Below are positions 14,165 through 50,656 of a stretch of 64,000 nt of DNA, in pieces. The notes under the pieces are model-generated. The model was not told where the DNA came from, ran no database searches, and was given only the letters and a program-made list of their open reading frames with translations. Source of the stretch: Heptranchias perlo. Its lineage: Eukaryota. Within the stretch, counting starts at the first letter, position 1; each line of letters starts with the position of its first letter. The stretch spans positions 19,158,001-19,222,000 of the forward strand of contig NC_090357.1 in NCBI RefSeq assembly GCF_035084215.1. Reading direction: 5' to 3'. The translations under genes and the position numbers were made by a program.

Positions 14165-14210
14165 TGCGCATGCGCATTGACGTCTGAGCGATGGTTGCGC
14201 TCTATTTAAA
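14165..14210 (+). promoter_or_regulatory. Putative Pol II promoter of the Harbinger Myb gene
   Basis: NRF1-type palindrome TGCGCATGCGCA (14165-14176), CRE-like TGACGTC (14178-14184) and TATTTAAA (14203-14210) upstream of ATG 14260. The TATTTAAAGGGGCAGTCC block recurs in copies A and C. Confidence 0.55.
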
Positions 14211-14259
14211 GGGGCAGTCCACCAAAGCCCCTCCAGCCACAAACTACACTCCATCAAGG

Positions 14260-16130: not shown

Positions 16131-16427
16131 GCACACAGGGATTGCACCAGGGTGTTTGTCGTTTTTTTAAAATTTTCTACTCTTTGAATGTCACCACAAA
16201 ATAAACTCACTTTTTCTCACCAATGCTGCCACCTCTTGTCCATAATTCTGCGGCTTGTGCAATATGTCCCTTCCGTGCGCCTCATCATGACGACGACCAC
16301 CCCGTCCCACCCATTGGGCATAATCCAGTGGGTGCAGGTGTACAGGCACCACTCTTCTGTGGAGGGAGCCTGTATGGACCCTCGTCTGTGCACGTTATGA
16401 CATGTGAACGCCTCACACAGTGTGATG

Positions 16428-19995: not shown

Positions 19996-20053
19996 ATGGA
20001 GGGTATATTACTGCAGCTGATCTTGTTCTTTCTGACACAGACTGGTGTAGCAG
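19996..20053 (+). CDS. Leader (signal peptide) exon
   Basis: MEGILLQLILFFLTQTGVA-G, ending in the phase-1 donor CAG|gttagt. Confidence 0.75.
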
Positions 20054-23000
20054 GTTAGTGCTCTGATTAAATTCCGTTAATCCGATCGCTGTATTACATT
20101 TATTGGTTCAGACTGCAACTCATCTCAAATGTTTGCTGATGCTGAATCCTAAACATGTTAAGAGTAACACGACTGGATCATTCAAATAAAAGTTCTGTAG
20201 TCATTAATATAATTTAAAAATATTATTTTGATACAAAGTTTCTACTTAGGTCCTTATATGGTTTATGTTTTAATAGAAATAAAGTGATGGAAAATTCCTT
20301 ACTAATAAAATACAGAATTGGCCAACATTTACAATGCAAGGATTTTGCTGGAACTCTGTGTTGTAGATTGAAGTTCAGCAGGAGGGTCGGGTACTCAAAT
20401 CCTGAATGTTCACAATGTAACATGTTTTGTAGCTATATAGAGTCTTTAGGGTGAAAATGAATACCGGGTTATCATTCAACTTCTAACATATGTTATAACA
20501 ATGATTTCATTTGTGAACTGAGATTGAATACTATAAAATTCACATGAAAAACTATGAACATTGTGTTCCTATTTTTTTTTCCATTGTGATTTTCTTCATA
20601 ATATTACAGGTAGATGTGTGTGATCAGGTCTCAGGTTATGTTCAGCAGATGAGGTATTTTATCCCATAAGTATCCCGGTTGTTGGGGAAGTGACTGCTGT
20701 GTCTCGTCAGTGCCCTTGAGAAGACAGTCCGTCACATAAATTGTATATTTAATTATACTGCAAGTGAAACTGACTGGATCCATACAGTCTGGTACAGGGG
20801 CTTTATTTTAAGAGTGATGTAAGAATTAACAATTCCCCATCAATCTATCTTAAAGGGCAATAGTGTGGCCTGCAGTTCTGACATTGAATCAGGTATTCTT
20901 AGCAGCTGTGTGAGATTGCTGAAGATTGACACAGTTTATTTCCAAGAGTCTCATTACATATATATTATATGGTGATGATAATCAATGTCCATCTGGCTGT
21001 AGATAGAAGAGGACAAGGGATATGGTTAGAGATTTATAATTAGACAATTGTTTTTATAGTTAATGTCAAAGGGTGCTGTAATACCACACATATCACTCAG
21101 ACCTGTATCTATAGAGCATGATGGTCAGCCAGCAGGCCTGAGATACACTGCTGACTGCACCTCACACTGTAAATTAACTACAATGGAGCTGTATGCTTGA
21201 ACGTATGCACAGAGCTCTGTTCATGGACGATTCATTTTTAACATTAAAGAGCATGAACAGAGTGGTCAACATTTTCGAAACATGAAAAAGATTTTAAAAA
21301 GGCCTGGGTACTTTGAAAATGCGACTTTGCACTGGGTTGGAGTTATACTGCAACTCATGTAAACTTCAAACAGACACAGTGACTACCTACTGCACAATGT
21401 TTCGATTCTGGATTTACGTAGAATTACATAGAATTTACAGCACAGAAACTGGCCATTCAGCCCAATTGGTCTTTATGCTCAACGCGAGCCTCCTCCCACC
21501 CGACTTCATCTAACTCTATCAGCATGTCTTCTATTCCTTCTCCCTCATATACTTATCTAGCTTCCACTTAAATGAATCAATGCTATTCACCTCAACTACT
21601 CCATGTGGTAGCAAGTTAAATATTCTAACCACTCACTGAGTAAAGAAGTTTCTCCTGAATTCCTTATTGGATTTATTAGTGATTGTCTTACATTTATGAG
21701 CCCTAGTTTACTGATTACTGATCAGTGCCTCAATCTATCATCAGTGCTACAGTTTAAACGAAACATATAGATTGATACAGAATTGTTACATCATTCTTAA
21801 AGTTTATGAATTAACATCTGTGGTGACTTACAGCTACAAGTATTTAATAAAAAATATTGTAGGCTACAATTTAAAACCCCAGAGATGTCCTCCATATATA
21901 AGGTACAGCTTAAAAAAAAGCTATTCAAGGAATTAGATGACTCAGATAATGTAGAATGGGTGAGACAATGGACATTTTGGTCCTGAAATTCTGCAGAGGA
22001 GCTCCAGGATTTCCTGCTGTAATTCTGGCAAATCCCACCCCCCCCACCCCCAGGAAAATGCTGTTAATGGTTTAAAATGGCTGTGTATGCTCTTTCCCTG
22101 GGAGTTCCACCAGTCTCCCACCTGAGATACAGCAGGAGACTTGGAAAACCCCCCTTTCAGGGCCTTTATGGGTGATGTACCCAGATTCCAAACTTGGTTA
22201 CTTTTTAAAAGTTATGAACATTTTCAACAATAACAATATCTGCATCTTGGTGGGAAACTGTTGGCATTACAACCGGATAGACACATTTGGGTGAAATCAT
22301 GCTGTGCGATGTTAGAATTTTTCTTTGTCTTCATTTATAGAGGATATCACTTGAAGCCCCTTGGCCCTCTAGTTTCAACAAAGACTTTATTTTAAATGAG
22401 TTGACATTAAATAGTGGCCAAAGAAATTTTGTTCAAATACATTAATTCAGTTGTGTGCTAATACTACAGAGCACAAGATCACCCCTTAAGTATTTTGGTG
22501 GCTGATTTTCCAATATTTGGACAAGTAAATAAGTCAGGCTCTTCCTTTCTAGTTCTCATTAATATTCTTATAAATTTCCAGATTTTGAAATCATCCCCTA
22601 GAACATTTCACTCAGGGCGACCCGAAGCACTTTACAGCCAATTAAGTGCTTTTGAAGTGTAGTCACTGTTATAATGTAGGAAACATGGCAGCAGATTTAC
22701 GAAAAGCAATGATTTAATAACCAGATTATCTGTTTTAATGGTGTTGGTTAAGGGAAAAGCTTTGGCTAGGACACCAGGAAAATTCCCCTGATCTTCTTCA
22801 AATAATGCCACAGGATCATTTACATCCAGCTGAGAGGGCAGATGGAACCTCGGTTTAATGTCACACTCGAAAGACGGCACCTCCGACAGTGCAGCACTCC
22901 CTCAGTACTGCACTGAAGTGTCAGCCTAGATTTGGTGGTCAAGTCTCTGGAATAAGACTTGAACCCACAACCTTCTGAGTGTGCTACCACTAAGCCATAG

Positions 23001-26000
23001 CTGGCTGGGGTACGGGGGCCCAATTTCAAAGTTTGCAGATGACACAAAACTTGGAAGTGTAATTAACAGTGAGGAAGATAGTAACAGACTTCAGGAGGAT
23101 GTAGACAAACTGGTGAAATGGGCAGACATGTGGTAGATGAAATTTAATACAGAGAAATGTGAAGTGATGCCTTCTGGAAGGAAAAATAAGAGGTAATAAA
23201 AACTAAATGTTACAATTTTAATAATGTACAGGAACAAAAAGATCTGGGGGTTCACAATCACAAATCTTTGAAGGTGTCAGGGCAATTCGATAATGCTGTT
23301 AAAAAAGCATACGAGATCCTTGGCTTTATAAATAAATGGTATAGAGTACAAAACCAAGGAAGTTATGTTAAACCTTCATAAATCACTGGTTGGTATCAGC
23401 TAGAGTATTGTGTCCAATACTGGGCACCACACTTTAGGAAAGATCTCAAGTACCATAATGATACCAGGAATGAGGGGTTTCAGTTACATGGAGAGCGTAG
23501 AGAATTTGGGATTGTTCTCCTTAGAGCAGAGAAGGTTAAGGGAAGATTTAATAGAGGTGTTCAAAATTATGAGAGATTTTAATAGGGGAAATAAGGATAA
23601 ACTGTTTCCACTGTTGGGCAGGTCAGTAACCAGAGAACACAGATTTAAGGTAATTGGCAAGAAGTAGGGGCAGATGAGGAGAATTTTTTTTTTATATACA
23701 CGGCAAGTTATGATCTGGAATGCACTGCCTGAAAGGGTGGTGGAAGCAGATTCAATAGTAACTTTCAAAAGGGAATTCGATATATACTTGAAAAGGAAAA
23801 AATTACAGGGCTATGGGGAAAGAGCGAGGCAGTGGGATTAGTTGGATAGCTCGTTCAAAGGGCCGGCACAGGCACGATGGGCAGAATGACCTCCTTCTGT
23901 GATGTAAAATTTTATGATTCTATGAAACGGGGACTTTTTTCAATAGAACAGAGAAGGTTAAGATTCTAGTTAGTGAGTCAGTACCTCAAAGGACAGAATT
24001 TTAAGATCACCACAAAAAGGGTGGAGAGAGGGGTTAGGAATTTATTTTATGCTGAGGCTTGTTAGGAATGCCTTACAAGAAACAGCAATGGAGGCATAAT
24101 CCATAAAGTTTTTAAAAAGGGAAATGAATAATATTTTTAAAATTTAACGGGTAAAATCCAATGATTATATGGAGCTAAAACAAATCAGAATAGATGGGAA
24201 TCAAAAGCAAAATACTGTGGATGCTGGAAATCTGAAATAAAAGCAGAAAATGCTGGAAATACTCAGCAAATCAGGCAGAATCTGTGGAGAAAGACACAGA
24301 TTTAGTGGGCCCGATATTAGGAGGGAGGCGGGTTGGCAGCGGGGGGTCGACTGGGCATGTGGGTAACGCGTTCGGTGAAATCAGTGATCGCAGCCTAATT
24401 GAAGGTACTTACGCGTGCTTCCGGGTTTCCTGTTGCAGACCTGCGCAGCGGGCGCACTGCGCACCCGCATCACAGGCTGTCAGCAGGAGGAGCCCTATTT
24501 AAAGGGGCAGTCCTCTGATGTTCGTCATGCAGCAAAGGACCAAATTGGCAGCATGGAGCAGTCCAGAGGCAAGGCTGCTCCAAGGTTCTCAGACTCCTCA
24601 CTCCAGGTGCTGCTCGATTGGGTCAGGAGGAGGAAGGAAACGTTTTTCCCAGCGGACGGGAGGAAGTGGCCTGCCTCTGCCACCAAGAAGGTCTGGCTCG
24701 AGGTGGCAGAGGAGGTCAGCAGCAGCAGTAACATCTCCCGAACCTGGGTCCAGTGCAGGAAGCGCTTTAATGACCTAACCAGGTCAGCCAAAATAAGTAT
24801 ACTTACGCATTCTCCCACACTCCGTCTTCCACATCACCTCCACCACCACACAACTCCTTCTGCACTGCCACGACAATGTTCTTGCATCACTCCTCACATC
24901 CACTGAACCATCATCCTCACCTTGCCTGCACTTACTCACCGCCCCAGTTCCCATTCGAACACTACCACGCAACCCACTCCTCATACAATCTCATGGCTGT
25001 GTCTCACACGCATCCTCCCATGCCCTCACGGTCACCCCCACACACACCAATGCATGCAACTATGCAACCATTACTCAATCCTCAATCATGCCTCTCTGTG
25101 TTTTGCATTGATAGGAGAAGAGATGCCAGAAGGCCCAGGAGAGGGATGATGGCGAAAGGGGACATGGAAGTGGGGATGCCACTCAAAGCGCTTCCATGTC
25201 TCACCCGTTGCCCCCCTCTCAACCCGGACTCACAATGCTGCCTCCTCTCCAGGTGGCAGAGTCTGCCCCTGCACAGGTGCAGGTGGAGCAATCTTTGGAG
25301 GGGCCCTCACGGGCACCGAAACCCAGAGGACATCTGCGCAAAGCATCTCATCGGTCAGGACATGGACAAGAGCAACCTGTCACTACCTCTGCTGAAGCCA
25401 CAGGGGTAGCACCACGTAGGGGGTCCCGTAAACGTAAGGCTAAGGTTTTGTGAGCACAAAAGTGTATGACGGAATGTCATGTTTTTCATTTAGATTTGTT
25501 TCTTTTGCCAACCACGTTAAATTTTGTAACCACTACTGCCACGTCTTTGCAAATCTTGTCTGGTTTGTGCAATAATTCCCTTTCCTGAGGATCACCCTGA
25601 AGACCCACACCTGATGCCACCCATTGGGTCACTGCAGAGTGGGCGTAGGTGTATTTGCAGGGCTCTTTTGTGCAGACGACTGAGACGCTGGAGATGTCCC
25701 CGGTGGCACCCTGGAAGGATCCGGAGGAGAAGCTGAGGGCAGTGGTGACTTTGATAGCGACAGGTAAGAAGATGGTGCTCGGGCCAGCCAGGAGCAGCTC
25801 GGCATCAAGGAGGCTGCAGATGTCCACGACTACATGTCGAGTGACTCTGAACCTCCGTGTGCACTGCTCCTGAGAGAGGTCCAGGAAGCTGAGCCGTGGT
25901 CTGTAGACCGTGTGGTGAGGGTAGTGCCTTCTGCAATGCATCTCTCTCTGCGGTTGCCCTCCCTTCTGCTGTGCAGGTGGATGTGCCACAGCACTGTGTT

Positions 26001-29000
26001 GTGGAGCTCCACACATCAGAGGTGGATGGCGTGGCCGGCGAGGCTGGTGTTGCTGTTCGTTCTCCGATGCAGCTATGGCGGCCCCCATCCGGAAGATGTA
26101 CGTTTGAGGGGGTCCGCAAGGTAGGTAAATGTTCTGCACATTGGAGTTGGTGAATTTTAGTGTTAGGAGGAGGGTGGTACAAGCCAAACTTTGTCCAAAG
26201 TGACAGAGTGGCTTCCTGCAATGAGTGAGGATCTCCCCCCCCACCCCCCCACCACCCCCCACCCGACCTGTCAAATGGACTTTTGCAACTCCCACTGGCT
26301 GGTGGCTGCAACATGTCTGTTTCAACTGGTAGTGTTTCCCCCAGTACGGGAAACACACTCAGTTGACATGAAAATCCCACCCCTCCTAAAATATCCTCCC
26401 AATCAGTTCTGCAAACGACCTGAACTGTGTTATTAATTGCTTTCAGTGGGATCCCACCAGCTTTAATTGCCGGTGGGAGTCCTTCATGCGGGGGCTGCGG
26501 CGCATCTCAGCATGTCATTGGGGAACCCAGAAGTGGGCAGATTGGAGCTGGGCTCCGGACCCGCCCCAGGAATCCCCAATTTTAGCAGCCACCCCCCGCC
26601 ACGAATGCACCCGCTCGGCTATCTGAAAATTGACCCCAATGTTTCAGGTCGATGACCTTTCGTCAGGACTGGAAGAACTTAGAGATTTAACACCCCATTT
26701 TGGCTTGCACCATCATTCTTTTTGTCATTTAATCATTCCTGCCCTCCATCCTATCATAGACCTTCCCTTTTGCACCTTCCTCCTCCCCCCATTGCCCTTT
26801 GCCTGGCTCTGTAACTGCTTAAAAATTGTTTAATCTTCAACTTCTTCCAGTTCTGACAAAAGGTTGTCGAGCTGAAATATTAACTTTGTTTCTTTCGCCA
26901 CAGGTGCTGCCTGACTTGCTGGGTATTTCCAGCATTTTCTGCTTTTATTACACAATAAATGGATGTGGTCATGCTTATACTATGTTCATGCTCTGACCAG
27001 ACCACATCTTAAGTGCTTTGTTTGGTCTAGTCATTAAGACACAGGGGAGAAACTCAAGCCCTGGAGATAGCTCAGAGAAGAGCCACAAACTGATTCCCAG
27101 CAGCAGAGGACTGAGCTATGGGGAAAGAGAGGAGAAACTTGGGTTATTCAGCATTGAAAGAAAGTTAATTGAGAGGTGACCTTCCAGAGGTATACAAGAT
27201 AGTGAACTGTATGGACACAGTAAATCCAGAATATTATTCCAAACTAAAACATGAGAATAGGACAAATGGCATAAGTTCAAACTATTAAAAAAGGCAAATT
27301 TAGGACCAATATCAGGAAATTTTCTTCACAGTGACCAACACATTGAATGCATTTCCAGGCAGAGTGGTGGAGACAATAACCCTGGAATCATAGAAGAGAC
27401 AATTAGATGCCTTGGGAGAGGGAGGGAAGGGATTTTGTAATGAGAGGAAGTCTATTTATGACTTAGGACTAGCATCACTAGGTGCAAAGAGAACAATTAT
27501 TAGTCAGATGTGAATTTTCTTGAAACAACCGAATAAGATTTATTAGGAACAACCACACAAGTGTTTCCATCCCAAACATACTACAGTCCAATTATCGATG
27601 GGAATACAATTCACCCATGTAACAGAGAAGTGAGGGAAACGCTCCTCTGACATCACACCTGACCATTGGGCCCTCTTGCTTCTGTGTGTAGGACTAGCTC
27701 AGCAGACAAATTCTCCTGCTTACAAACTTATGGAAGGAGTTTTTATATCTATTGCTCCACCTCTACAGGGGTTTCTCTAATTACAAGAGATGGATCAGCA
27801 TACCCCTACTGCCTGAGCCAATGGAACAACTCTATTGCCCTGGCTGCATCTGGATCACATTTACTGAGACCACCTCTCTTCCTCCACACAACATACACCA
27901 TTATTTCAAAGCAACCCAACACATCAGGAAGATACTGTTCCTGCCTTAATGGGTCTACCATTTAGCATGAATCAAATATACCACTGAACTGTAAACAAGA
28001 ATATTCGATTCACAGTTAGATAGCTAAATACACATTAATAAAGCAGGAGATTAACCCCGTCTTATAAACTGTGGGGTCGTCCTGGATGGATCAGCTAAGA
28101 TGAATGGCCTTTCTCATCTGCAATTATCTTGAGATCTACCTAATAAATGGGTATATTGATCTTTTAATATACTAGTGGCAATGATTTGCTGCTCTGTTAA
28201 ACTTACTGTGTAAACACTATTAAAGTCACCAAATGTGTTTGATGATTTTTGCTATAATTTTATTATGGGACAATTTCCCTTCTTCATTCGTCAAAGCAAA
28301 ATTGTGAACATGTGCATTACACATATTTACAATTTCACAATAAATAATAAATCTTCCCCATTATTAGTAGACGAGTCTGATTGGGTCTAAGATTACATTC
28401 AGCAAATGTTGCATTTTGTCCCATTAGGTGTTCCGGTGATTGGGGAGGTGACTCAGCCCCGTCTGGTCAGTGTCCTGCGAGGAAAGTCAATCACAATAAA
28501 CTGTATGTTTAATTACACTGCAAATGTCAGTGATTGGATCCATACAGTCTGGTACAGGAGCTCGCCAGGGATCGCTGATACTCACTATAAAGGGAATGAG
28601 CTGAGCTGCATTCCTGAGATTACTCCGGGTGTTTCTAGTCGTTGTGTTATGTTATTGAAGATTGAAAATGTTTCTTTCAAAATCTCCGATTCTAATTATA
28701 CCTGTGTGGTGAAAGTACCAACTGTCTACCCGCCCATAGAGAGAAGAGGACCAGGAACACGATTGCATGTCAATGGTAAATTGTGTGTATATATCATAAA
28801 CGGATAATACTTTTATATGAATAACTACTGTTACCAGAATTTAATAGGTAAAGATAATGGAATGCAATGCCCAATGTGATCATTTCTGAACTGCTGGGAC
28901 CATGAAAGTGCCATTCCATGGAAGGTAATGAATGATGAATGTTGGATGTAAAATTGGACTGGTAGTCCAGAGTTCTGATTGATTTATCTTCGGGGCCAGG

Positions 29001-32000
29001 GACAAAGTTCATAGAACTTTTATTCCGGATTCGGTGAATCCATGATGGGCCAAATGGCACCCGGTACGTGGATAGAACAGGCTTGGTAGGCCAAAGGCCT
29101 TTTCTCAGTCTATTGTTATGTTTTTTTTTTCTACATTAGGTACACTGATCAGTGCCTCAGCCAATTATTGGTATAATAAAATGTGGACCTACTCCATTAC
29201 AATGAAGCCTAGGCCTGTAGACACAGTTTCAGCAGGGGAGTGGGGGGGTGGGGGGTTCAACTTTGGTAAACAGCAGCTTTGGTAGCAATGCTGATGCATA
29301 TTTCTTCTCCATAGTCCAGGAATGCTGAAGCCATATGTAGTATGTCATCCCCAACTGCTATTGGCTAATTCAGCACAAGGTCCCTCCTCATCTGTACTGT
29401 TCAATTACTTTTTATTCTTGGAATCCATAAATGCCCCAAAAGACAGTTTAACTGAACCAACCATTTGCCTCCCCTCCCCCACAAATGGGCTCGAAAGCAA
29501 AATAATAATTGATAATGAACTACCTGTCTGACATCAAGTTGTGGATAGGTCAGAACTTTTTCCAGCCCAGCATCAAGACTGAAGCCATTCTTTTTGGCTC
29601 TCACCAGTCTTTGTGCCTCAACCATTGGTTCCAATCCACTTCTCAAATGGTTGCTCAGACTGAACCCAACCAAGTACAGTCTCAGTGTCTTGTTTGACCC
29701 AGAGCCAAGATTTAAACTCCACATGACGTCCACTAACAAGATTGCCTACTTCCAGTTCCATAACATCCCCATCTATGTCCCTACTTCACCGCCAAAACCA
29801 CTGAAACTCTCATCTACTCCTTCATCACCCTTGACCCCTCTGTCCTTGCCAACTACTGCCCCATCTTCAACCTCCCTTTCCTCACCAAAGTCCTTGAATG
29901 TGTAGTCGCCTCCCAACAATTTTTTTTTAAACATTGATGATACTTGCACCTCACTGGGAGGCTGCACATCGTGCAACTGGAATTATACATGTAGCTTCTT
30001 GGAAAATGTCAGCATTAACTGCGAGTGACTCACCTCCTGACTCCCCAAAGCCTTTCCACCATCTACAAGGCACAAGTCAGGAGTGTGATGGAATACTCTC
30101 CACTTGCTTGGATGAGTGCAGCTCCAACAACACTCAAGAAGCTCGACACCATCCAAGATAAAGCAGCTCGCTTGATTGGCACCCCATCCACCACCCTAAA
30201 CATTCATTCCCTTCACCGCCGGCGCTCAGTGGCTGCAGTGTTGACCATCCACAGGATGCGCTACAGCAACTCGCCAAGGCTTCTTCGACAGCACCTCCCA
30301 AACCCGCGACCTCTACCACCTAGAAGGACAAGAGCAGCAGGCACATGGGAATGACACCACCTGCACGTTCCCCTCCAAGTCACACACCATCCCGACTTGG
30401 AAATATATCGCCCTTCCTTCATCGTCGCTGGGTCAAAATCCTGGAAATCCCTTCCTAACACAACTGTGGGAGAACCGTCACCACACGGACTGCAGTGGTT
30501 CAAGAAGGCGGCTCACCACCACCTTCGCAAGGGCAATTAGGGATGGGCAATAAATGCCGGCCTTGCCAGCGACGCCCATATCCCATGAACGAATAAAAAA
30601 AACCTCCATTTAGGAGTTTTATAATATTAGTGTAAACATAATATACATATAATTTAGGTTCTTCATTTCTAGTTCTTATTTTTCCCCAATCATAAATAAT
30701 AATTCAATTTAACTTAAGGTCTTATACAAACAAATCTAATATAATTTCAGATCCTTCATTACAATTCAATATACCCAAATGAAAATTGAGTAAAAACGTT
30801 TAGGCATTATGCCACAAATCCTATGTAATTTCAGGCTATCTATTGGCATCTTGAAATACTAACAGAAATCAAATAGCAACATTACAATATAAAGAGACTA
30901 GAGAGACATACTGCAGATCTATCACAATAGCAGTGATCCAGGGTGCAGGCAGAACTGGTGTCCACACTTAATTCGCATTTACTGAATTTGGGCCTAAAGA
31001 TGTGAAATCCCCCAATTCCCATTGAAACAACATCGGGCCTCATGCAAAATTTAACATATTAGATAAAAACATAAAAATGAAAAACTGAAATGCCATTCTT
31101 ATCACTAAGGGGAAGGCATTTTATGTGACTCTGCCATTTGATGGGCTGTATGATCTTCACCAATCATGAGATACAAATTATATTCACGATACACTCTGAA
31201 CACCCACTGTGTAATTCGCTTATTGAAATGGAACTGCTATATGCTTTGAATGTGTAAAGCTTGTTTGACATTGGTTTGCTATTTTTTTTAAAAAACATAA
31301 ATACAACATCACTGTATTTGACGTTGTATGTTACAGTGCCGCCATCTCCTCCAGCAATTTCTATTACTCAGGAAGAGTTAATAGCTGGGAACGAGTCTGT
31401 TTTGTACTGCCTTGCTGGGGGCTTTTATCCTCAGAATATCTCCATTAAATGGCTACACAAAGAACAAACCATTTCTCACAATGGTCAATCTTCACAAGCA
31501 GATGGTAAAATTAGATATACGACCAGACTGTTCACCTTCAGGAACTCGGATGGCACATTTAATGTTACCAATCGAATGATTTTTGTCCCCACCTTGCAAG
31601 ACCATGGTACAATCTGTACTTGTCAAGTCCATCATACGATGTGTAAAAGGCTGATAAAACATATAACACTGAATGTGAACTGTAAGTATGTTCAATTAAT
31701 TAATTTGTGGCCTTCTGTTTTTAATTTTCTATTATATAGCACACTTCCAATGGAAGTCTAAGGCGGCCTAATCGCTAACTGCTTCACTGAAGCTTTAAGG
31801 TAATTTGGCAATGTCAGTCTAGAGTGTCTGTGTGAATGGCAGTCTGAGCTTGGAGTGTCCAAGTTAGCACACTGTCCTTTCACATCTGGGTCTGAAATTC
31901 AGCTCAGAAGATTGGGATGAAGGCCTTTTGTCTCTGCTGGGTATCTTATGTCTTAGGTAAATTGGGCAATCTCAATGAAACTGGCCCTGCAGATGGGGTT

Positions 32001-35000
32001 GCTCTTCTATAGTTGAGGCAAAGGCACATCATTTGGCAGAGTAGCAAGATTTTGACTCTGAAGCTGGCTGAGCTATACCTGACTTGGGAGTGCTTGAAGT
32101 GGCCCACTCTTTTTTGCTAAAATTCTTTGCCTTGATGAGCACGGAAAATTCAACACAATTGAAAGTAGAAATCTCCCTTTATTACATTTACGATGGACTT
32201 AACACTTAAGATTATATACTTGCCAGTAGAATGCATTTCCCCTTTAATGAATATATTGGAACCTAGTACACTGCTCACTTCTCTTGTAGAAATTGTTGAT
32301 TTCAGTGTAGGCTTATAGTATGTGGATCTATCACTGGCAAATTATACTCCTAATTGGTAATGGGTTTCAATGACTTATGCTTAATTTTATAAAGTGGCCT
32401 AAATTATATTTTTGACATTGTTAATGAAAATGATAAATCTGATCTATGCAAACTATTTATTGAGGTGAAGGGCTCAAATACCCAGTGACTCAGGTTAAAA
32501 TTGAGAAAGTTAGGAATAGAAAGGGAAGTCAGTGGGGCATTTTCAACTAAGGGGTATAAATTTAGGAAATAAACTGCCAGGAAAGACCTCTGAATTATAA
32601 TATAAATGAACTCAAGAACTAATTAGATGTGTTTTTGAAGGCAGAGGAATTGAGGGAAATTGGAAGAAGGTGAGGTTTGTCTACTAAAAAGGGTCGGATT
32701 AGTCGGGCTTTCTCCTATTCATAAAAATTCTGTCAAAGGCTCACCAATCTGCTACATCACATGTACAACTTCACATAGTCCTGATCACAACAGGATGGTC
32801 AGGAGAGATACCTCCACCGTGAACAAGGAAGTGGAAATTGGAGAATAAGTCAATCTGTGTTACTTTTGCACATTTTCAGTGACTGGTTTGAGAGTGGTGT
32901 CAATTAGGAATGGTTTGTCTGCCTTTCTTTTGGTTAGGAGGACACATCTAATAAATGGAAATAGAATTTCATTTTAACAATCAATCCTTTCATAAGTGTA
33001 ATAGGAAGACAGGAACAGGAATGGGCCATTCAGACCCTCAAGCCTGTTCTGCCATTCAATAAGATCATGGATGATCTGTATCCTAACTCCATTCACCCAC
33101 CTCGGCTCCATATCCCTTAATACCCTTGGCTAGCAAAAATCTATCGATCTCAGATTTAAAATTATTAATTGAGCTAGCATCCATTGCTTTTTGTGGGAGA
33201 GTGTTCCACACTTCTACCAGTCTGTGTGAAGAAGTGTTTTCTAACTTCTCTCTTGAATAATCAAAACAATTACCCCAATACTTTAAAAAAAACAGTTCTG
33301 TGCCCTTGGATACATATTTATACAGAAAGGGCATACCTGCAATGGATGCTTCAATTTCCTGTCAGTTTTGTCTGTCCTCTGACCAAATGTACACAGTTCT
33401 ACGAAGCTTTATTGAATCTGCCGATATTACTAATTACTTTCCACTTCCATGGTTCTGATTCAGATGGTCCGCAGCCCGTTATACATTACAGGTCTTCTGA
33501 TTCAGACCAGCTCCTTCCACTGCTCCAAGATGTCATCCATGCCACTCCCCAGTCATTTCTTGAACTAAACTGTACAGCAGACAGTAACCCAGCATCCACA
33601 GTTATCTGGAAAAAGAAATCCTGGGGGCAAAGTGGAAGCATACAATTGGCTGCTGGAGTAAGCAGTTCAGTCCTGAAGAAAATGAGTGTTGATGATTCAG
33701 ACAGTGGAGAGTATATTTGCAGAGCGCACAATGCATATGATTTAAAAGAACACGTTGTTGGAATACACATACTATCTGGTTTGAAAAGTAAGTGCAATGA
33801 TGCTACCTGCAAAAAGGAATGTTTCTTCATTATGAATTCTCAGTGTAGAGCAAACTGAGAGAAGAGTAATTTATTATAAACTCAAAACATTAACTCATCT
33901 TTTTGCCTTTTCATGTGCCAGACTTAAATGATTTGATTGTAAAGTATACAGCTTTGTAAGAAAAAGAATAACCCTGCGGTCAGTGAGCCCATCAACCTTA
34001 CAAGGTGTAGTATCTAAGAAAAGGACCAGATGAATATTTAAGTTCTTTACCTTAGCTCCCCATCAAAAAAACATCTGGGGATTTAACATCCATGTCTAGA
34101 GGATTACTAGATGCCTAAATTTTGCTCCCTTGAACTATCTAACATTAACCAGCCTGAAGAATATTAACCCGTATGTGACCAATCACCCTTCAGAGGGCCA
34201 GTACACTGCTGAAAGAATGAGGTAACCTCAAAGAGAAAGTCAGGCAATGAAATCATGAACTAACATTCCTTATTAACATACTTATGATAATATATTTAGC
34301 ATCATTTTAATATTAAACATTACAAGTATTCAATATACTTGAGTAGATGTTATTAACTAACAATTAATATCTGAGGTTACAAAGGCAGTTGAAGTGGATC
34401 ATAATAAATCAATACAAGCTGGGCTCTACTTATTAGTAGTTGATGTTATGCTTAAGGTCCAAGATTGACATGAAGACAGCGAGGTTCGTTTAGGTTAGAC
34501 TTCAAATATAGCTGCCAAGTTAACAACTTTGAATAGTGAGTATGTCGAATATATTAAGACTAGCTAATTCAGTTCATTGCTGATGAGCTTGCAGCTTAGC
34601 AACATTAGCAATATTCTTAGATCTTATACAAACTAGTTCTTTCAAATCAACATCTTCTATGATTCTATTGCAGGCAATTGGGACTAGCTTAGTGGTATAA
34701 ACTGGGTGACATGGACATGTTGGGCCGAAGGGCCTGTTTCCATGTTGTAAACTTCTATGATTCTATTATAGAGTTGGTGGTCTCCCCTCTCTGAGCTGTT
34801 TGTGCTTGCCTCAGAGATATCAGCATAATTAATCTCTTCTATCAGAGTTTTACATCCTCCTTCTTTCTCAGCAGCACCAACCTCTTTTGTGATCTCAAAA
34901 ATAAGTTAACTTGCAAACTGTAAAACCCTGACAAAACAAGGGGCATCAACTCAGATTGCATGTTGGAAAATTTTGCAAACTCCCGCTTGCCCAGAATGCA

Positions 35001-38000
35001 CAGACGTGTTTGAAAAATCTTTCCATCTGTTGTGAGGTTAAAAAAAAAATCCAGTTGAATTCCAGGCTTTTGAGTCAGACTGAGACCTTCAAGTGAAAAC
35101 ATGAATGGAGGCATCAAAAGACAATTCAGTGGGTAAATTTAATCAGGTCATTGTGAAATATGTAGTTACTTTTTCATTTAAAGAAAATGTTTAAAACTTT
35201 ATTTGACATTAGAAATTTTAGTTTTAGAAAAAAAAGTGGATTTTTTTTTCAAAAAGCATTTTGAATGATTTGATTGGTTAATGGTGAATTTTAAAAAATT
35301 TAGATAAAGTTTTGCCATTATAAATATTTCATATTGATTTTCAATGTGAAATGTCGATATTAAAAACGTGACTCAACTTCTTGACACAAAGTAAAGTTGG
35401 ACGACAGGAAATGTATACCATATGCAAGGTTCTATAAATATGCCATGAGTCACCAGGCACAAATGTTACAGTTTAAGTAACGATTCCAGCTGATCTATCA
35501 TTTTTTTAAAATATAGATTGATGCAAAACAACTCAAATACAGCTAGGTTACCAGTATTGGTGAAAATAGCTTTATCTGTAATGCAGGCCTGAAGTTGTAC
35601 TATGCCTAAAACAGTAATATTACATTGCCAAGACTTGCTGAATTGTTGAAACAAGGACTGACGTATTCCTACCTCCTGCAATGTGGCATGGAGATCCTGC
35701 ACTGGCACTCATGGAGAAAATGAAATTTAAGTCACAAATCATGATGTTAATACTATATTGAGACAGTATACCAGGAATGCAATTTAGCTTGTATTTATCA
35801 CCATTCTTTTACATTGAAGCAGATCATGAGAACTTAAACTGCTTTTCTGTTCCTTTACAGGTAGTTTTCCAGTCCGAACTGTGACAATGCCAATCTTCGT
35901 GGTGTCTGTCATTTTATTACTGATCTGGGCCAGTAGATGGAAAGGTAAATTAACAGTGGCTGACTAGAGGCACAAATGTGAAGTGACGGTTTTAATAGCC
36001 ATTAACTCATTCACCACTTGATGTGATTTGGTTTAGTTAACAGAATTTGGAGTGAGAAAAAAAAAATCAAGCCACCAAACCTGCTCAATAAGATATTCCT
36101 CCAATGCTTGGTCATGGGACAATGATAGACAGCATCATTATTGCAGCTGTTCAGAGTGGTTGCAAGATGCAGTAAATGAAGTGTCACAGAGATAGCATGT
36201 CACAAATGATGGATGCTATTCAGTACATAATCTGTGCATCAAATGAAATGGTAATTTAAATAGATGATGGTAAACAAATATTAATGGAACTATGTGGAAA
36301 GGTGTTTGATTTGTTCTGAAATACAGGGACTTAAGTTAGAATAAGATCATAAAAAAATACACATTTCTGAAAATTATTAGCAATGCACAATAATTTGGGA
36401 GGTGGTTGAGAGATGTATTTACATGTCGTAAGCTAAATTATTTCATTAAAGAAATCTGAGCTTTCCTCAGGACTGTAATGCCATGTGGTGGCTTGGAAGG
36501 ACCTGGTAGCATAGAAATGTAATGTTGTGGTCACCTTCACAGCCTGGCAGAGCTGTCCCTGTGTGAGCAGGTCCTGTTCAAGGAGACAGCATGATTCAGT
36601 CACAGTCTCTCTCAGGTATTACAGACAATAAAGGGAGATAGGTGTGCCAAATCCTGAACATGTTATTCATGCGACAAGGACAAGAGTGTGTCAAATGCAT
36701 CAGGTGAAATTACGCCTGCTTGCCTTTCCTTCACATCAATTTTTCCTCTTCTAAATCGAGGAGTACCGTAGGAATTCCCATGCTGAAATATTAGCATGTT
36801 GCCAGTAAAATAGCAGCAGTCAGCAAGACTGTGCTGGCCAAAGGATTCTGCAGCATCAGTGTTGCAATGCAAAAATAAAGCACCAAACACCACCAAGATA
36901 ACGCACAAACAGGAAACCAAAAATATATAAAAGAGCGCCTTCAATAAGTAATAATCAAACAGAGCTTTAAGAAATAACCTCCCCAATGCCACAACAGAAA
37001 TCCCAGCAGCATATAAAGAATGACCAGGTGAAAAAACACAGATTGCAAAATTTTCTTAATAATACATAATCATCTTATTTCACAGATAAGTACTGCCCTC
37101 GCAATTGTGGGTAAGTCACAATCTAACCTGTTACTCTTTTAGTATAAATGATAGATTGAACAACTGTTTGAGCTAATCTGCACCAAATAACATGCACATT
37201 TACAAACACCAAGCTACAAAACTTAATCATTGCAGTATACAGTTCCGGAAACTCTAAAGCTTAGACTCAATGACCAGCGGCTGACTCCACAGCCTTACTT
37301 CATTTGGCACTATGCTAGACAGCAGAGTTTGGATGAACTGAAGTTTACAGAGTGAAGCATAGGAAGCCGGCCAGGAGAGCATTGCAATAGTCAAACCTGG
37401 AAGTAACAAAGGCATGGCTGTGGGTTTTATCAGAAGATGGGTTAAGGCAGGAGCTGAGGCGAGTGACATTATGTTGATGGAAGTAGGCGATCTTTATGAT
37501 GGAAAGGATATGGGGTTCGAAGCTCAGCTCTTGGTCGAATAGCTTACTGAGGTTGCAAACAGTCTGGTTCAAACTGAGACAGTTGCAGGGGAGGGGGACG
37601 GAATCTGTGACCAGGGTACGGAGTTTGCGGTAGGGACCGAAGATTACGGCTTCAGTCCCACTTAGACTGGATGTTGGATAAGCAGTCTGACAGCACAGAG
37701 GCAATGGAGGTGTTGAGACAGGTAGAGGAGAGGTAGAGCTGCGTGTCATCAGCGTACATGTGGAAGTTGACCACATACCTTCGGATGATGTCACCAAGGG
37801 ACCGTGTATAGATCCTTGGAGGACTCTGGAAGCAACAGTTAAGGGGCTGGAAGAAAAGCCATTGCTGGAGATGCTCAGCCTAAGATTGGATGGATAAGAG
37901 TGGAACCAAGCGAGGGCAGTCCCACTGAGCTGGACAATGTAGGAGAGGCATTGGAAGAGGATGGTGTGACTAATCATTTTGGAGGCTGCAGAGACGTCGA

Positions 38001-40581
38001 AAGGCTTGGAGTGGCCTGGTGCACCACGGTCACAGTCACAGAAGATGTCATTTGTGACTTTGATTAGGGCTGTTACAGTGATGTGGCAGGGGTGGAAACC
38101 TGATTGGACAGATTCAAACAGAGCTACAGGAAAGATAGGTACAGATTTGGGAGATGAGAACACATTCAAAGAATTTGGCGGGGAAAGGGAGGTTGGAGAT
38201 AGGGCAGTCGTTTACAATGACAGAGAGGTCGAGGGTGAGTTTTTCGAGGAGAGGGTGACGAAATCGGTTTTAAAACAGTGAGGGATAGTACTTGAGGAGA
38301 GGGAATCATTTACAATGTCAGCTAGCATAGGGACCAAGAAGGAAAGTTGGATTATCAGTAATTTTGTGGGATTGATGTCTGCGAGGAGCTCAGAGACGGC
38401 ATGAGGGAAGATGGGAGAAAAACTAAGAAAGACAGGGGTTCAGGGCAGGAGGAAGCCTGGGGGGTCGGGGGTGGTTAGGCTTGGTAAGCATAGAGAAGTA
38501 GCAGAAGCAGCTGAATGGATGGTCTCAGTCTTAGTGACTAAGAAGTCCATGAGCTCCTCACCCTTGTTGTTGAAGGTGAGGGTGAATGGGGGCAGGAGTG
38601 AGGTGTTTAAAGAGATAGTTAGTAGTGGAGAAAAGAAGAATGAATTAAATGCCAAGACTGTAGACTGAAGTAAATAAACCAAACACATGAACTCAGGACA
38701 AGTGCACTTAGAGATGCTATCTGGTGTATATAACTTACAAATGATACATTTGAGATGTGGCCGTTTACTGGAACTTCACACTAACAAAGCACAATTCAGA
38801 GAGAAAGGAGAAAATCTAATCACAGTAGCACTAGAGACTATAGACACAAAGGGCTCAATTTTGAAATGGTGGCAGGTTGGCAGCGGGGGGGTGAAGATGC
38901 AGTGGCAAACCTGAATTTAAAAAAACTTACCGTTTCTGAAGCGATCGCAATGTAATTGATGGTGATTAAAGTTGTTTCCGGGTTTCACGCCCGGCAGCCA
39001 GCCTGATTGACAGGCTGGCTGCCGACAGAAACTGAAACACCGAGGGGGTTGGGGGGGAAAGAGAGAAAGAGAAAGAGAGAGCGAGACGAGTCATCCAGCG
39101 CTGGAACGGAAGATCGGGGGGGGGGGGGCGGGGAGGGGGAAGATCAGCGGGGGGGGAGGGCGGTGGAAAGAGTGGAAGATTAGGGCGACATCGGGGGGAG
39201 GGGGAAAGAGGGGGAGATCGGAGAGGGAGATATCGGACATCAGAGCAGGTTGGAAAGGTAGGTTGATTTTGTGTTTTAACTTTGTGCAATGGTTTGTTAT
39301 TTCATTTATTTTTTTTTCTTTTTGCCTGATCTGGCCAGGCGAGAATCAGAAGCCGTGGGAAAGCCGCCCAGGTAAGTTAAAAATCATTCTAACTACCTAA
39401 TATGTCACAAGTAAAATGCCTTAAGTATCTCAATGAGGTACATTTGGTTCTTTAACTATGATCCCGCCGGCTTTAATAGCGCACACAGGTGGGTTTGTGG
39501 GAAACTCGGAAGTCAGCGGGCTGGAGCCGGCTTCTGAACCTGCTCTGCCTTTCTGCAATTTTCGCAGCCCCGCCCCCCCCCGCCCCGGCAATTTAAATTT
39601 AAAATTGAGCCCAAAATGTTAGTTTGTCTGAACCCTGAGTTTTGTCAAAGGTATTTGTTTTTGGCTATAAACTGACATGGTAGAGATAATAGCGTCAAAT
39701 ACATTCCACTTAATTTCAAATTTTGTTTGGCACCATTTATGGTTTTAATAGTCATTAAGATAAATCAATGGTCATTACACCAACAGATACAGAATTTATT
39801 AAATGTCATTTTAACATTGCATTTGATGCTAAAATTTCATCTCCAAGGAGAATACTGCACAGTTACATTCTCCACCCAGCTCCTCCACGCCATCCCGAAC
39901 AACTTTTAGTCATTCCTACAACGTAATTATCTGCTCTCCAACATACCATCACAAATAATATTCATTTCATTCCCCTCAGAGCACAGATCATTTAGCTTCA
40001 CGTTATAACTCAGAGGCAGAAGTATTGGCATCATGGTTTTAGAAGCAATAAGCCACTCAAATCCACCAGACCTCAGCGAGGATTTGATAAATTAAATTAC
40101 AGGACAATAACTTGGTTGGATTATCAGAAAACCATTTTTTCAGCTAATCTAGTCCTAGAACTTTTATTTCAAAATGTGGACATGCAAAAGACATAGCAAA
40201 TCATCCTTTGACATGAAAGCTTGAATTACCTGGTCAGCAATATTGGCAGCTAATCACGGTCTGATGAGTTAATTCATCGTTGGCACAGTGAAGGTTAAAT
40301 GGATTGGGTGGAATCATTGACAGGGTAGTTTGTACTATGTCTATGGAAGAAGCTGATTTGATGGACTAAATTACCTTGCTTATTCTGTGCTTTATGTTCT
40401 TAGATCACCTTTAAATGAGCTTCACTGCAGCAGAATGATAGAATCATCCCTCACAGGTTTGCCATTTTGTTTACCCATTAGGAATTCAAAGGAACAGGGG
40501 AACCAATGGAGAGCGGTTGAAAGTGACAAAGTAGAAGATGTTGATGCTCAAAAGGACGAAATAACATCCTCAGAATTCTGA
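19996..40581 (+). CDS. Ig-superfamily receptor, leader-VJ-C1-C2/I-TM-cytoplasmic, 427 aa, join(19996..20053,28428..28775,31337..31681,33464..33787,35861..35944,37086..37110,40482..40581)
   Basis: All junctions are GT-AG. The first five introns are phase 1 and the last is phase 2. The exons sum to 1284 nt with no internal stop. The three Ig exons and the TM exon are firm; the leader and tail exons are less certain. Confidence 0.8.
20670..21038 (+). pseudogene. Decayed duplicate of the VJ exon (pseudo-exon) in intron 1
   Basis: Pieces translate as NCIFNYTASETDWIHTVWYR, NSVACSSDIESGILSSCVRLLKID and DRRGQGIWLEIY, matching the exon at 28428-28775. It has frameshifts, stops and no donor site. Confidence 0.88.
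21418..21710 (-). mobile_element. CR1 LINE 3' end
   Basis: Reverse complement of the CR1 tail seen at 4020-4250 (aagaagtttctcctgaattcc, ggccattcagcccaa). Confidence 0.75.
22620..23002 (-). mobile_element. Deu-domain tRNA SINE (SacSINE1-like)
   Basis: Reverse complement of the Deu core (gacggcacctccgacagtgcagcactccctcagtactgca) and of the B box. Confidence 0.8.
23020..23925 (+). mobile_element. CR1 LINE 3' fragment
   Basis: Starts at KFADDTKL, includes ORF 23410-23667 and ends in the tail tatgattctatga. Confidence 0.85.
24203..26952. mobile_element. Penelope-type element with inverted terminal arms, split by Harbinger copy C
   Basis: The arm 24235-24303 plus 26641-26690 is the reverse complement of 26830-26950 (aataaaagcagaaaatgctggaaatac). 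Each arm has a hammerhead-like core. Confidence 0.65.
24307..26637 (-). mobile_element. PIF/Harbinger copy C, non-autonomous (two internal deletions)
   Basis: Termini GGGCCCGATATTA and GAAAATTGACCCC with flanks agt/aat. Myb exon 1 is open (24552-24791). Exon 2 is fused into late exon 3 near 25131. The transposase deletion matches copy A. Confidence 0.9.
28428..28775 (+). CDS. V-set Ig exon with germline-joined J-like strand
   Basis: VTQP...SITINC...TVWYR...LKIENV...DSNYTC...RGPGTRLHV. Acceptor ccattag and donor G|gtaaat; 348 bp, phase 1-1. Confidence 0.93.
29510..29915 (+). mobile_element. L2 LINE fragments
   Basis: LSDIKLWIGQNF...KTEAILFG, similar to the L2 at 37254-38630. Confidence 0.6.
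30020..30602 (+). mobile_element. LINE 3' end (CR1/L2 group, second family)
   Basis: ORF 30025-30354 IYKAQVRSVMEYSPLAW...KKLDTIQDKAARLI, ending in gaataaaaaa. Confidence 0.8.
31337..31681 (+). CDS. C1-set Ig exon
   Basis: LYCLAGGFYPQNISIKW, NSDGTFNV and TCQVHH are C1-set hallmarks. Acceptor ttacag and donor T|gtaagt; 345 bp. Confidence 0.93.
33001..33258 (-). mobile_element. CR1 LINE 3' end
   Basis: RLVEVWNTLPQKAM...FKSEIDRFL in ORF 33083-33334; similar to 42311-42560. Confidence 0.8.
33464..33787 (+). CDS. C2/I-set Ig exon
   Basis: YGP...LELNCTADSNPASTVIW...DSGEYICRAHN. Acceptor ttcag and donor A|gtaagt; 324 bp. Confidence 0.9.
35861..35944 (+). CDS. Transmembrane exon
   Basis: SSFPVRTVTMPIFVVSVILLLIWASRWK. 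Strong acceptor ttttctgttcctttacag and donor AAG|gtaaat; phase 1-1. Confidence 0.85.
37086..37110 (+). CDS. Cytoplasmic mini-exon (DKYCPRNCG)
   Basis: Acceptor ttatttcacag and donor GG|gtaagt; 25 bp, phase 1-2. Confidence 0.7.
37254..38630 (-). mobile_element. L2 LINE ORF2 fragment (intronic)
   Basis: ORF 37345-38169 contains QSGFHPCH, ALIKVTND and HAFVTSRFDYCNALLAG. Confidence 0.85.
38851..39612. mobile_element. Harbinger-related MITE (762 bp)
   Basis: Perfect 12-bp TIR GGGCTCAATTTT / AAAATTGAGCCC and TSD AAA. Subterminal ggttggcagcgggggg and atcccgccggctttaat are shared with the coding copies. Confidence 0.85.
40482..40581 (+). CDS. Probable terminal cytoplasmic exon (NSKEQGNQWRAVESDKVEDVDAQKDEITSSEF*)
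   Basis: Acceptor ttttgtttacccattag, phase-2 compatible with 37110, lying in a unique non-repeat stretch. Confidence 0.55.
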
Positions 40582-40769
40582 GCATCGAGGGAATCTCATT
40601 CACAAGCTCTTCATCTTTTTTTTTACAAAGTACCATTTAGACCAGAATCTCTTTTGTGCTGAGCCCCCACTTTCAGAGACTCATGTCCCATGTGTACCCC
40701 CTCCCCTTTTCTAAGAAACAGTATTTTTGTACAGAACAAGAGAATATTATTTTCTTGGCGAATATAACA

Positions 40770-41985
40770 TCTGTGGATGTGGTTTATTTGGATTTTCAGA
40801 AGGCCTTTGATAAAGTACCATGTAAGAAGTTAGTGTGCAAAATTAAAGCACATGGGATTGGCGGTAATATACTGGCATGGATTGAAAATTGGTTAACGCA
40901 CAGGAAACAGAGAGTAGGAATAAATGGGTCTTTTTCGGGGTGGCAGGCAGTGACTAGTGGGGTACCGCAGGGATCGTTGCTTGGGCCCCAGCTATTCACA
41001 ATATATATCAATGATTTGGATGAGGGAACCAAATGTAATATTTCCAAGTTTGCTGATGACACAAAACTAGGTGGGATTGTGAGCTGTGAGGTGGATGCAA
41101 AGAGGCTTCAATGTGATTTAGACAAGTTGAGTGAGTGGGCAAATACATGGCAGATGCAGTATAACGTGGATAAATGTGAAGTTATCCACTTCGGAAGGAA
41201 AAACAGAAATGGCAGAGTGTTATATAAATGGTGTTAGATTGGGAAATGTTGATGTACAAAGCGACCTGGGTGTCCTTGTACACCAGTCACTGAAAGCAAA
41301 CATGCAGGTGCAGCAAGCAGTTAGGAAGGCAAATGGTACGTTGGCCTTCATTGCAAGAGGATTTGAGTACAGGAGCAAGGATGTCTTACTGCAGTTATAC
41401 AGGGCCTTGGTGAGACCACATCTGGAGAATTGTGTGCAGTTTTGGTCTCCTTACCTAAGAAAGGATATACTTGCCATAGAAGGAGTGCAGTGAAGGCTCA
41501 CCGGACTGATTCCTGGGATGGCAGGACCATCGTATGAGGAGAGATTGGTTTGACTCGGCCTGTATTCACTCGAGTTTAGAAGAATGAGAGGGGATCGCAT
41601 TGAAACATATAAAACTCTGACAGGGCTAGACAGACTGGATGCAGGGAGGATGTTTCCCCCGGTTGGGGGGTCCAGAACAAGGGGTCACAGTCTCAGGATA
41701 CGGGGTAGGACATTTAGGACTGAGATGAGGAGAAATTTCTTCACTCAGAGGGTGGTGAACCTGTGGATTTCTCTACCACAGAAGACTGTGGAGGCCAAGT
41801 CACTGAATATATTTAAGAAGGAGCTAGATAGATTTCTGGACACAAAAGGCATCAAGGGGTATGGGGAGAGACCGGGAATATGGTATTGAGATCGAGGATC
41901 AGCCACGATCATATTGAATGGCGGAGCAGGCTCGAAGGGCCGAATGGCCTACTCCTGCTCCTATTTTCGTTGTTTCTTTGTTTCT
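40770..41985 (+). mobile_element. CR1 LINE, 5'-truncated (RT to tail)
   Basis: YLDFQKAFDKV, SGVPQGSLLGP, KFADDTKL and a CR1 tail. Confidence 0.92.
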
Positions 41986-50340: not shown

Positions 50341-50656
50341 CATCAGACAGTGTGAAGAGTCCAGTCCTCACCACCTGGACAGCGGAGCGGCCACATCAGC
50401 CCCCTCCCCCACCCCCTGCACAAAATAGTCATGCAACTACACCTACACCCACTGTAGACTGACCCAATGGGTGGCATCAAGTGTGGGTGTTCATTGTGAA
50501 CCTCATGAAAGGGAGTTATTGCACAAGCCAGTCAAGAATGGGCAAGATGTGGCAGTAGTGGTGATAATAATAAGATTTATTGTGAATGGAAAACAAAACA
50601 AATATAAATAAAAAACATGACAAAGCGTCAAACAACCTTATGCATCCCCTTTGTGC

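Follow-up and report, generated by a model that had tools for sequence, protein, structure and literature searches.

SIRPs are paired receptors of the architecture V-C1-C1, in which the alpha form bears an immunoreceptor tyrosine-based inhibitory motif (ITIM), the beta form has a basic membrane residue and a short tail, the gamma form is short-tailed, and DAP12-coupled forms occur (PMC12975943). UrIg and UrIg2 are non-rearranging VJ-C1 genes of elasmobranchs with a split leader and a single-exon VJ domain (PMC12227049, PDB 9DMX). The secreted UrIg contains three C1 domains, whereas in UrIg2 they number nine to eleven (PMC12227049). Siglecs carry a V-set domain with a critical sialic-acid-binding Arg, followed by C2-set domains only (PMC6829431). 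NKp30, the CD28/CTLA-4/PD-1 family, NITR, CD8, CD79, and PRARP make up a further set of receptors with a germline-joined VJ domain (PMC11599192). Germline-joined VJ-C1 genes feed models of antigen-receptor origin, the recent cases being UrIg (2023) and UrIg2 (2025). The 64,000-nucleotide stretch of the Heptranchias perlo genome analyzed here (contig NC_090357.1, positions 19,158,001 to 19,222,000; hereafter, the window) harbors a VJ-C1 gene of this kind. In all likelihood, it is an intact, germline-joined (i.e., non-rearranging) gene for a type I membrane receptor and belongs to a wider family of fish proteins. With a probability of roughly 0.6, its full best explanation is that it represents the type A lineage of an old fish family of SIRP-like paired receptors of the immunoglobulin (Ig) superfamily.

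The gene occupies positions 19996-40581 of the window on the forward strand and comprises seven open exons (Table 1), whose 1284 nt amount to 427 codons and a stop codon. All six introns begin with GT and end with AG; introns 1-5 are in phase 1 and intron 6 is in phase 2. The seven GT-AG exons and the 427-residue type I protein proposed in an earlier note on this DNA, which was made from the sequence alone, are thus reproduced. Each exon was translated and searched singly, and full-length searches used the orthologue proteins. In Pfam, the successive exons match V-set, C1-set, and Ig_3/I-set domains, in keeping with the VJ-C1-C2/I order that had been read from the sequence; a membrane span follows. 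The leader is split, with its hydrophobic part in exon 1 and its last residues in exon 2, on either side of the 8.4-kb intron 1; antigen-receptor V genes likewise have a split leader. The exon 1 leader is similar to the leaders of family members (MQLLLKLLFILQT..). For exon 4, a second in-phase acceptor is possible at 33506; the acceptor at 33464 is preferred because the alignment to the closest orthologue, P0001, begins at 33466.

P0001, a protein of 408 residues from Pristiophorus japonicus, is the best relative of the gene and matches all of its exons in order. The two are identical at 67% of positions in the V domain, 70% in the C1 domain, 68% in the I-set domain, 59% in the membrane span, and 55% in the last exon; the 25-nt exon 6 is matched as well. 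Judged by sequence, such a collinear exon match is far beyond chance. A HMMER search of 1.84 billion proteins with the V exon retrieved six full-length relatives (E = 1e-23 to 1e-43), after which the scores fall steeply. The other close relatives of the gene found with the V exon and with P0001 are all elasmobranch, which bears out the shark origin that the earlier note had thought probable. One-to-one orthology with a characterized gene, a prospect that the earlier note had raised, was not found in these searches.

Exon 2 matches the Pfam V-set model with E = 3.3e-5 and 24.5 bits, slightly below the 26-bit cut-off, which P0001 clears at 35 bits. The core of the domain is formed by Cys25 (28502-28504), Trp41, and Cys92 in a Tyr-x-Cys motif (28703-28705). 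A J-type G strand, G107-P-G109-T110-R-L-H-V114, lies in frame at 28748-28771 of the same exon and is followed by the splice donor. In addition, the domain contains an extra pair of cysteines, Cys60 and Cys72. C25, C60, C72, C92, and G107-x-G109 are invariant in all 22 of the 22 aligned family V domains, and the extra C60-C72 pair is, at the level of this alignment, a signature of the family. A scan of both strands for recombination signal sequences (RSSs) found no heptamer-spacer-nonamer within 20 kb of the V exon and gave only weak matches, at 7776 and 63266. Both the reading of the exon and the RSS scan thus bear out that the J strand (RGPGTRLHV) is already part of the V exon and has no RSS beside it. 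A rearranging Ig or T-cell receptor (TCR) gene was considered and rejected, since a single exon holds V and J without a break and runs up to a splice donor, and no RSS is found within 20 kb.

The ectodomain had also been described as antigen-receptor-like. The description holds in the general sense of a VJ domain followed by C1, which is common to the SIRPs, but no strong affinity links the V domain to those of Ig or TCR. In the PDB, the V exon scores 18-25 bits to V-lambda, and the 60 best of its 961 matches (E up to 1) are nearly all antibody V domains together with one shark VNAR, with no Siglec among those listed. An Atlas search with the V exon gives mixed V-set neighbors (PD-1, CTLA-4, IgSF3, CD22/CD33-like, and generic V-set clusters) and assigns no family. 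In the V tree, the nearest outgroup is a paddlefish CD28-like V domain on a long branch. The other germline VJ receptors (NKp30, the CD28 family, NITR, CD8, CD79, and PRARP) share the joined VJ-type V domain but differ from the window gene in that they lack a stalk of C1 and I-set domains, having a single V or V with I or C2. An AlphaFold2 (AF2) model of the window V exon alone has a mean predicted local distance difference test score (pLDDT) of 65.7, with the G strand below 50, and was kept out of the fold searches.

Exon 3 matches the Pfam C1-set model with E = 1e-11 as opposed to 3.3e-8 for C2-set_2, a CD80-like model, and the C1-set assignment made earlier from its GFYP, DGTF, and CxVxH motifs is confirmed. 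Its PDB matches comprise UrIg2, SIRP gamma D3, B7-H6, and Ig CH domains. Its Atlas neighbors are all C1-set clusters, one of which is SHPS1. Exon 4 matches Ig_3 (E = 1e-9) and I-set (E = 4e-7), as well as titin, contactin, and DSCAM.

Members of the family with the same V-C1-I architecture are found in many sharks and rays and in sturgeon (Huso), paddlefish (Polyodon), and bonefish (Albula). The family is therefore not confined to chondrichthyans, contrary to what had been supposed. Literature searches found no paper describing it, and to that extent it can be called undescribed; however, many predicted members are already present in RefSeq and UniProt under misleading automatic names, which include Siglec-8/10/11/12/13/14, MAG-like, sialoadhesin-like, syg-2-like, SIRP-alpha-like, and HMCN2.

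Three forms can be told apart among the members by alignment and by comparison of their membrane spans and tails. Type A comprises the window gene, Pristiophorus P0001, Hemitrygon P0031, Scyliorhinus torazame P0032, S. canicula P0010, and Hemiscyllium P0008. These proteins have a C1 domain with GFYP, a membrane segment of the form [F/I]-x-x-R-x-[V/I]-[T/S]-x-P-[I/L]-F-V, and juxtamembrane cysteines, and they have no ITIM. The tail of elasmobranch type A proteins is acidic, has about 45 residues, and ends in [S/T]-E-[F/L]. Huso P0037 and Polyodon P0030 are near type A in architecture and in the membrane-span motif.

Type B is found in Rhincodon, Stegostoma, Hemiscyllium, both Scyliorhinus species, Heptranchias, Cetorhinus, Carcharodon, Heterodontus, Mustelus, Leucoraja, Rhinoraja, Narcine, and Mobula. 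Its second domain is diverged (GLYS.NISF.W) and retains the C1-set match. The membrane span is uncharged, and the tail of 120-130 residues carries three ITIMs (x-x-Y-A-x-V, VSYADI, and SEYSVV). Short type B forms are present in Heptranchias perlo (P0051) and Pristiophorus japonicus (P0052), in which a type B ectodomain is joined to a span with a mid-membrane Arg (LIWIFVIRFIAVAAF.. and IWSFIIRSIAVAAY..) and a tail of 6-9 residues. In form, these two proteins resemble classic activating counterparts to the type B receptors with ITIM tails. The teleost protein Albula P0027 has a V-C1(GFYPQN)-I ectodomain and a tail with LVYADI and TIYSEV. A further type B protein, P0040 (Hemiscyllium ocellatum "Siglec-8 isoform X2", 610 residues), has tandem V domains at 18-131 and 133-246, followed by C1 and I-set domains. 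Type A and type B proteins are encoded on contigs of equal size in Hemiscyllium (57,068,925), S. canicula (106,706,591), and S. torazame (135,740,748); therefore, in these three species, the two types most likely reside on the same chromosome.

In the C1 tree, the window gene falls in the elasmobranch type A clade (98/97), and type B forms a separate clade of sharks and rays (100/99). Because the type B clade holds both sharks and rays, the split between the two types is older than the shark-ray divergence. The domains have diverged very unevenly between the two types. The V domain of the window gene is 43-60% identical to those of type B and scores up to about 150 bits against them, compared with 161 bits against P0001. 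For the C1 domain, the identity to type B is 34-46% (about 31-58 bits, compared with 170 bits against P0001), and for the I-set domain, it is 32-46% (about 28-62 bits, compared with 135 bits). Paired receptors usually show this pattern, in which the ligand-binding domain is kept alike and the stalk and tail are not. Gene conversion was considered in view of a V tree in which type A seemed to nest in shark type B. It was dropped, and no such claim is made, because the approximately unbiased test does not reject the monophyly of type B (p = 0.48).

The conserved Arg of the type A membrane segment is encoded at 35875-35877 and is located at the outer edge of the span. The R..P.FV motif is kept in shark, ray, sturgeon, and paddlefish proteins, and about three-fourths of the positions of the segment are conserved between sharks and paddlefish. 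In the AF2 model of P0001, a helix at 340-371 takes in R347. The juxtamembrane stretch of exon 6, DKYCPRNC, corresponds to DRYGPCNC in P0001, with equivalents in P0031 and P0032. The tail of 45 residues is acidic and ends in ITSSEF, which fits the pattern of a class I PDZ ligand; the C-termini of the orthologues (ITEF, MTSEF, and TTSEL) are likewise kept. The tail exon of the window gene contains neither an ITIM nor an immunoreceptor tyrosine-based activation motif.

On the basis of its third domain, the earlier note had set SIRP aside. This was not borne out: outside the fish family, the large sequence searches led to no named family other than the SIRPs, and the fish family has SIRP-style paired forms. 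In word-indexed searches of 5.8 billion proteins with P0001 and with a family profile, only SIRP alpha and beta were found outside the family (E = 1e-10 to 1e-36, 25-28% identity). Along its full length, the V exon shares 28% of its residues with pig SIRP alpha D1, with RGPGTRLHV in place of SGPGTRLFV, and the start of the C1 exon is 46% identical to pig SIRP alpha D2 (GGFYPQNISIKW vs AGFFPQNISLKW). SIRP alpha also gives the best global superposition on the AF2 model of P0001 (template modeling scores of 0.47/0.60). In a C1 tree built without Ig, TCR, or major histocompatibility complex (MHC) outgroups, the family stands beside SIRP D2, with a split of 85/83 from the side of SIRP D3. Like the SIRPs, the window gene encodes a non-rearranging type I protein with a distal V domain that has the J motif minus its leading aromatic residue, followed by a C1 domain with GF[FY]PQNIS.KW. 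At the level of the family, the likeness extends to ITIM tails (YAD[IL] and SEY..V) and to short-tailed forms with a basic membrane residue. In contrast, the third domain is an I-set domain here and a second C1 domain in SIRP, the window Arg is at the membrane edge, and the 45-residue acidic tail of PDZ type has no SIRP counterpart.

A number of observations weigh against the SIRP-like reading. The identity to SIRP is low (25-28%), and the word-indexed search may favor proteins that share GF[FY]PQNIS.KW. In a PDB profile search, MAG D2-D3 (99.7 bits), an Ig heavy chain V-C1 (99.6 bits), and UrIg2 V-C1 (94 bits) all score above SIRP alpha (79.8 bits), and, taken domain by domain, the C1 exon has its best PDB match in B7-H6 (37.9 bits). 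The V tree, which like the C1 tree was built without Ig, TCR, or MHC outgroups, does not group the family with SIRP V. The third domain is I-set rather than C1 and has no similarity to SIRP D3. The Arg of the window gene is at the edge of the span, not within it, and is not set in the N-x-x-R context known from receptors that couple to FcR-gamma. Typical activating receptors end in a stub, unlike the conserved 45-residue tail, and separate forms with a mid-membrane Arg already exist in the family. Finally, a search of sequencing runs returned six runs, each with 5-7% of the words, in which no splice junction was seen, a result that does not speak for silence of the gene. The matching reads fall mostly on intronic repeats (29.7-30.7 kb and 33.0-33.2 kb). 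Two exact read contigs of low depth cover 28356-28510 and 33543-33693, the former of which crosses the boundary between intron 1 and exon 2 and hence derives from unspliced RNA or DNA. In view of the PDB ranks, the trees without outgroups, and the non-SIRP third domain, the family is named SIRP-like and not SIRP. That "SIRP-like paired receptor" is the right frame is somewhat more probable than the contrary.

It is rather unlikely that the gene encodes an adhesion molecule of the nectin, Necl, or CRTAM type, which would serve cell-cell adhesion and not immune signaling. Known members of this type have a V, C1-like, C2/I ectodomain and a PDZ-binding tail, features with which the match of exon 3 to C2-set_2 (3.3e-8) and the conserved [S/T]-E-[F/L] C-terminus, as a possible class I PDZ ligand, are consistent. 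When the AF2 model of P0001 (pLDDT 79.4) was searched against the PDB by Foldseek, the three-domain ectodomains of nectin-1, nectin-3, Necl-4, and CD155 were among the top matches (E = 1e-15 to 1e-13). However, these ranks do not discriminate between families: MAG, nectin-1, CD22, Necl-4, CD155, and SIRP alpha all match with E = 1e-19 to 1e-13, and MAG, CD22, SIRP, and titin score alike. No nectin, CADM, PVR, or CRTAM protein was found in any of the sequence searches (PDB, HMMER, and word-index). The C1-set model outscores C2-set_2 on exon 3, and ITIM tails or a mid-membrane Arg, both typical of paired receptors of the immune system, are found in the sister genes.

It is also improbable that the gene is left over from the antigen-receptor precursor lineage, i.e., a third paralogue beside UrIg and UrIg2 and not an innate receptor of SIRP type. 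The window gene shares with the elasmobranch UrIg and UrIg2 a split leader and a single-exon VJ domain followed by C1 (PMC12227049), although its intron 1 of 8.4 kb holds a pseudo-V. Among the PDB matches of the C1 exon, UrIg2 ranks first (summed E = 9.8e-11), and it aligns over V and C1 with the family profile (94 bits). Three weak domain matches (19, 6, and 13 bits) add up to the former score, so that the similarity per domain is at most 19 bits. The constant domains of UrIg and UrIg2 are all C1, three or nine to eleven in number, whereas the window gene has one C1 and one I-set domain; neither UrIg nor UrIg2 has an I-set domain or ITIM-bearing paralogues. Moreover, neither of them was found in the HMMER or word-index searches.

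The automatic names of the relatives suggest a true Siglec, i.e., a MAG-, CD22-, or sialoadhesin-like sialic-acid lectin, which is highly improbable. MAG Ig1-3 and CD22 d1-d3 are among the top Foldseek matches, MAG D2-D3 aligns with the C1 and I part of the family profile (99.7 bits), and type B tails have an ITIM and a distal ITIM, like those of CD33-type Siglecs. The likeness to Siglecs and MAG thus comprises a membrane-proximal I-set/C2-type domain (..C.A.SNP...W..), a similar three-Ig shape, and the ITIM plus distal ITIM of the sister genes. The V domains differ in type, in that the one encoded here has the canonical B-F cysteine pair, Trp41, a J strand, and an F strand (NYTCVVKV) without Arg. 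Domain 2 is a C1-set and not a C2-set domain, and the V exon has no Siglec among the PDB matches listed above (60 best of 961). Evidently, it is the I-set domain and the ITIM tails that gave rise to the Siglec-type names. A gene model that is non-functional or wrongly assembled, be it a recent pseudogene or a set of exons that are never spliced together, would fit the lack of RNA support, the decayed V copy in intron 1, and the introns full of transposons, but has very little probability in the face of seven open exons with consensus splice sites, 55-70% identity to an orthologue with the same order down to the 25-nt exon and the position of the stop, and the presence of all family-invariant residues.

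The SIRP-like type A gene encodes a glycosylated type I receptor, in which a stalk of C1 and I-set domains bears the membrane-distal VJ domain, and its family has both inhibitory and Arg-in-membrane members. The VJ domain would bind its ligand via loops like the complementarity-determining regions, as SIRP D1 does. The similarity of the V domains suggests that the ligand is the same as or related to that of the ITIM-bearing paralogues. Type A has no ITIM and would therefore be unable to recruit SH2 phosphatases. Instead, it may signal or be positioned via its conserved membrane segment (the Arg and Pro motif), the juxtamembrane cysteines, and the acidic tail. The conservation of about three-fourths of the membrane segment between sharks and paddlefish suggests a specific intramembrane contact, perhaps with an adaptor whose membrane span is acidic. 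The conserved cysteines may be sites of palmitoylation, and the [S/T]-E-[F/L] end is a candidate class I PDZ ligand. This specific signaling route, which is proposed from motifs, is tentative.

A conserved VJ-C1-I-set family, with inhibitory, mid-membrane-Arg, and type A forms, is present in elasmobranchs and in basal ray-finned fishes. Current annotation conceals the family under Siglec and MAG names, and such names in shark and ray genomes are no basis for sialic-acid biology. A wider and more doubtful proposal is that the family is the fish representative of an ancient non-rearranging VJ-C1 lineage, either as the stem of the tetrapod SIRPs, in which the I-set domain was replaced by a second C1 domain, or as a third, independent VJ-C1 lineage beside UrIg and UrIg2, with inhibitory/activating pairs already present in the common ancestor of cartilaginous and bony fishes. 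If this is true, SIRP-style paired receptors would have originated in the era when antigen receptors arose. With the relation to SIRP and the chromosomal position resolved, the family could date the SIRP-type paired receptors and could inform which VJ-C1 lineages preceded or accompanied RAG-mediated rearrangement.

Table 1. Exons of the receptor gene and other features of the window (positions in the window).
Feature	Position	Strand	Content
Exon 1	19996-20053	+	start codon; greater part of the signal peptide (MEGILLQLILFFLTQTGVA + 1 nt); donor gttagt
Exon 2	28428-28775	+	single-exon VJ domain
Exon 3	31337-31681	+	C1-set domain (..LYCLAGGFYPQNISIKW.., DGTF, CTCQVHH)
Exon 4	33464-33787	+	I-set / Ig_3 domain (..LELNCTADSNPASTVIW.. 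DSGEYICRAHN)
Exon 5	35861-35944	+	membrane span SFPVRTVTMPIFVVSVILLLIWASRWK
Exon 6	37086-37110	+	25 nt; Cys-containing juxtamembrane stretch (D)KYCPRNC(G)
Exon 7	40482-40581	+	acidic tail NSKEQGNQWRAVESDKVEDVDAQKDEITSSEF; stop codon 40579-40581
Pseudo-V	20670-21040	+	decayed duplicate of the V exon, inside intron 1
Harbinger/PIF-like DNA transposon	~5900-8800, 14190-17660, 24400-26400 (intron 1), 48850-51880	both orientations	at least four diverged copies
LINE reverse-transcriptase fragments	9973-10638 (-), 40656-41493 (+), 43512-43934 (-)		RVT_1 E = 1e-8 to 1e-22

The pseudo-V of intron 1 was detected when the V exon was compared by phmmer with the six-frame translation, which gave matches at 20694-20819 (E = 4.5e-11) and 20823-20972 (E = 1.4e-6). 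It is identical to the V exon at about two-thirds of DNA positions, with an exact shared run around GACTGGATCCATACAGTCTGGTACAGG. Its defects include stop codons, insertions and deletions (one of them a 24-nt insertion), and the loss of both the F-strand Cys and the donor. Two tandem V exons may have been present in the ancestor of the gene, an arrangement that Hemiscyllium P0040 retains. Very weak V-like matches are also seen at 57407-57794 (minus strand, 57639-57794, E = 0.048; plus strand, E = 3.3) and are probably due to chance.

The window contains no runs of N and, besides the gene, holds mobile elements only. Each copy of the Harbinger/PIF-like transposon has a Myb/SANT open reading frame (ORF), a DDE_Tnp_4 transposase, and a 369-residue ORF without a Pfam match; two of these 369-residue ORFs are 67% identical to each other. 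The LINE fragment on the plus strand begins 75 nt past the stop codon of the gene. Two intronic segments, 29700-30660 in intron 2 and 33025-33220 in intron 3, are very highly repeated, with thousands of read contigs from the runs of two organisms at 88-99% identity and a summed depth of up to about 8e5. They are probably repeats of SINE/LINE type that are common to related species.

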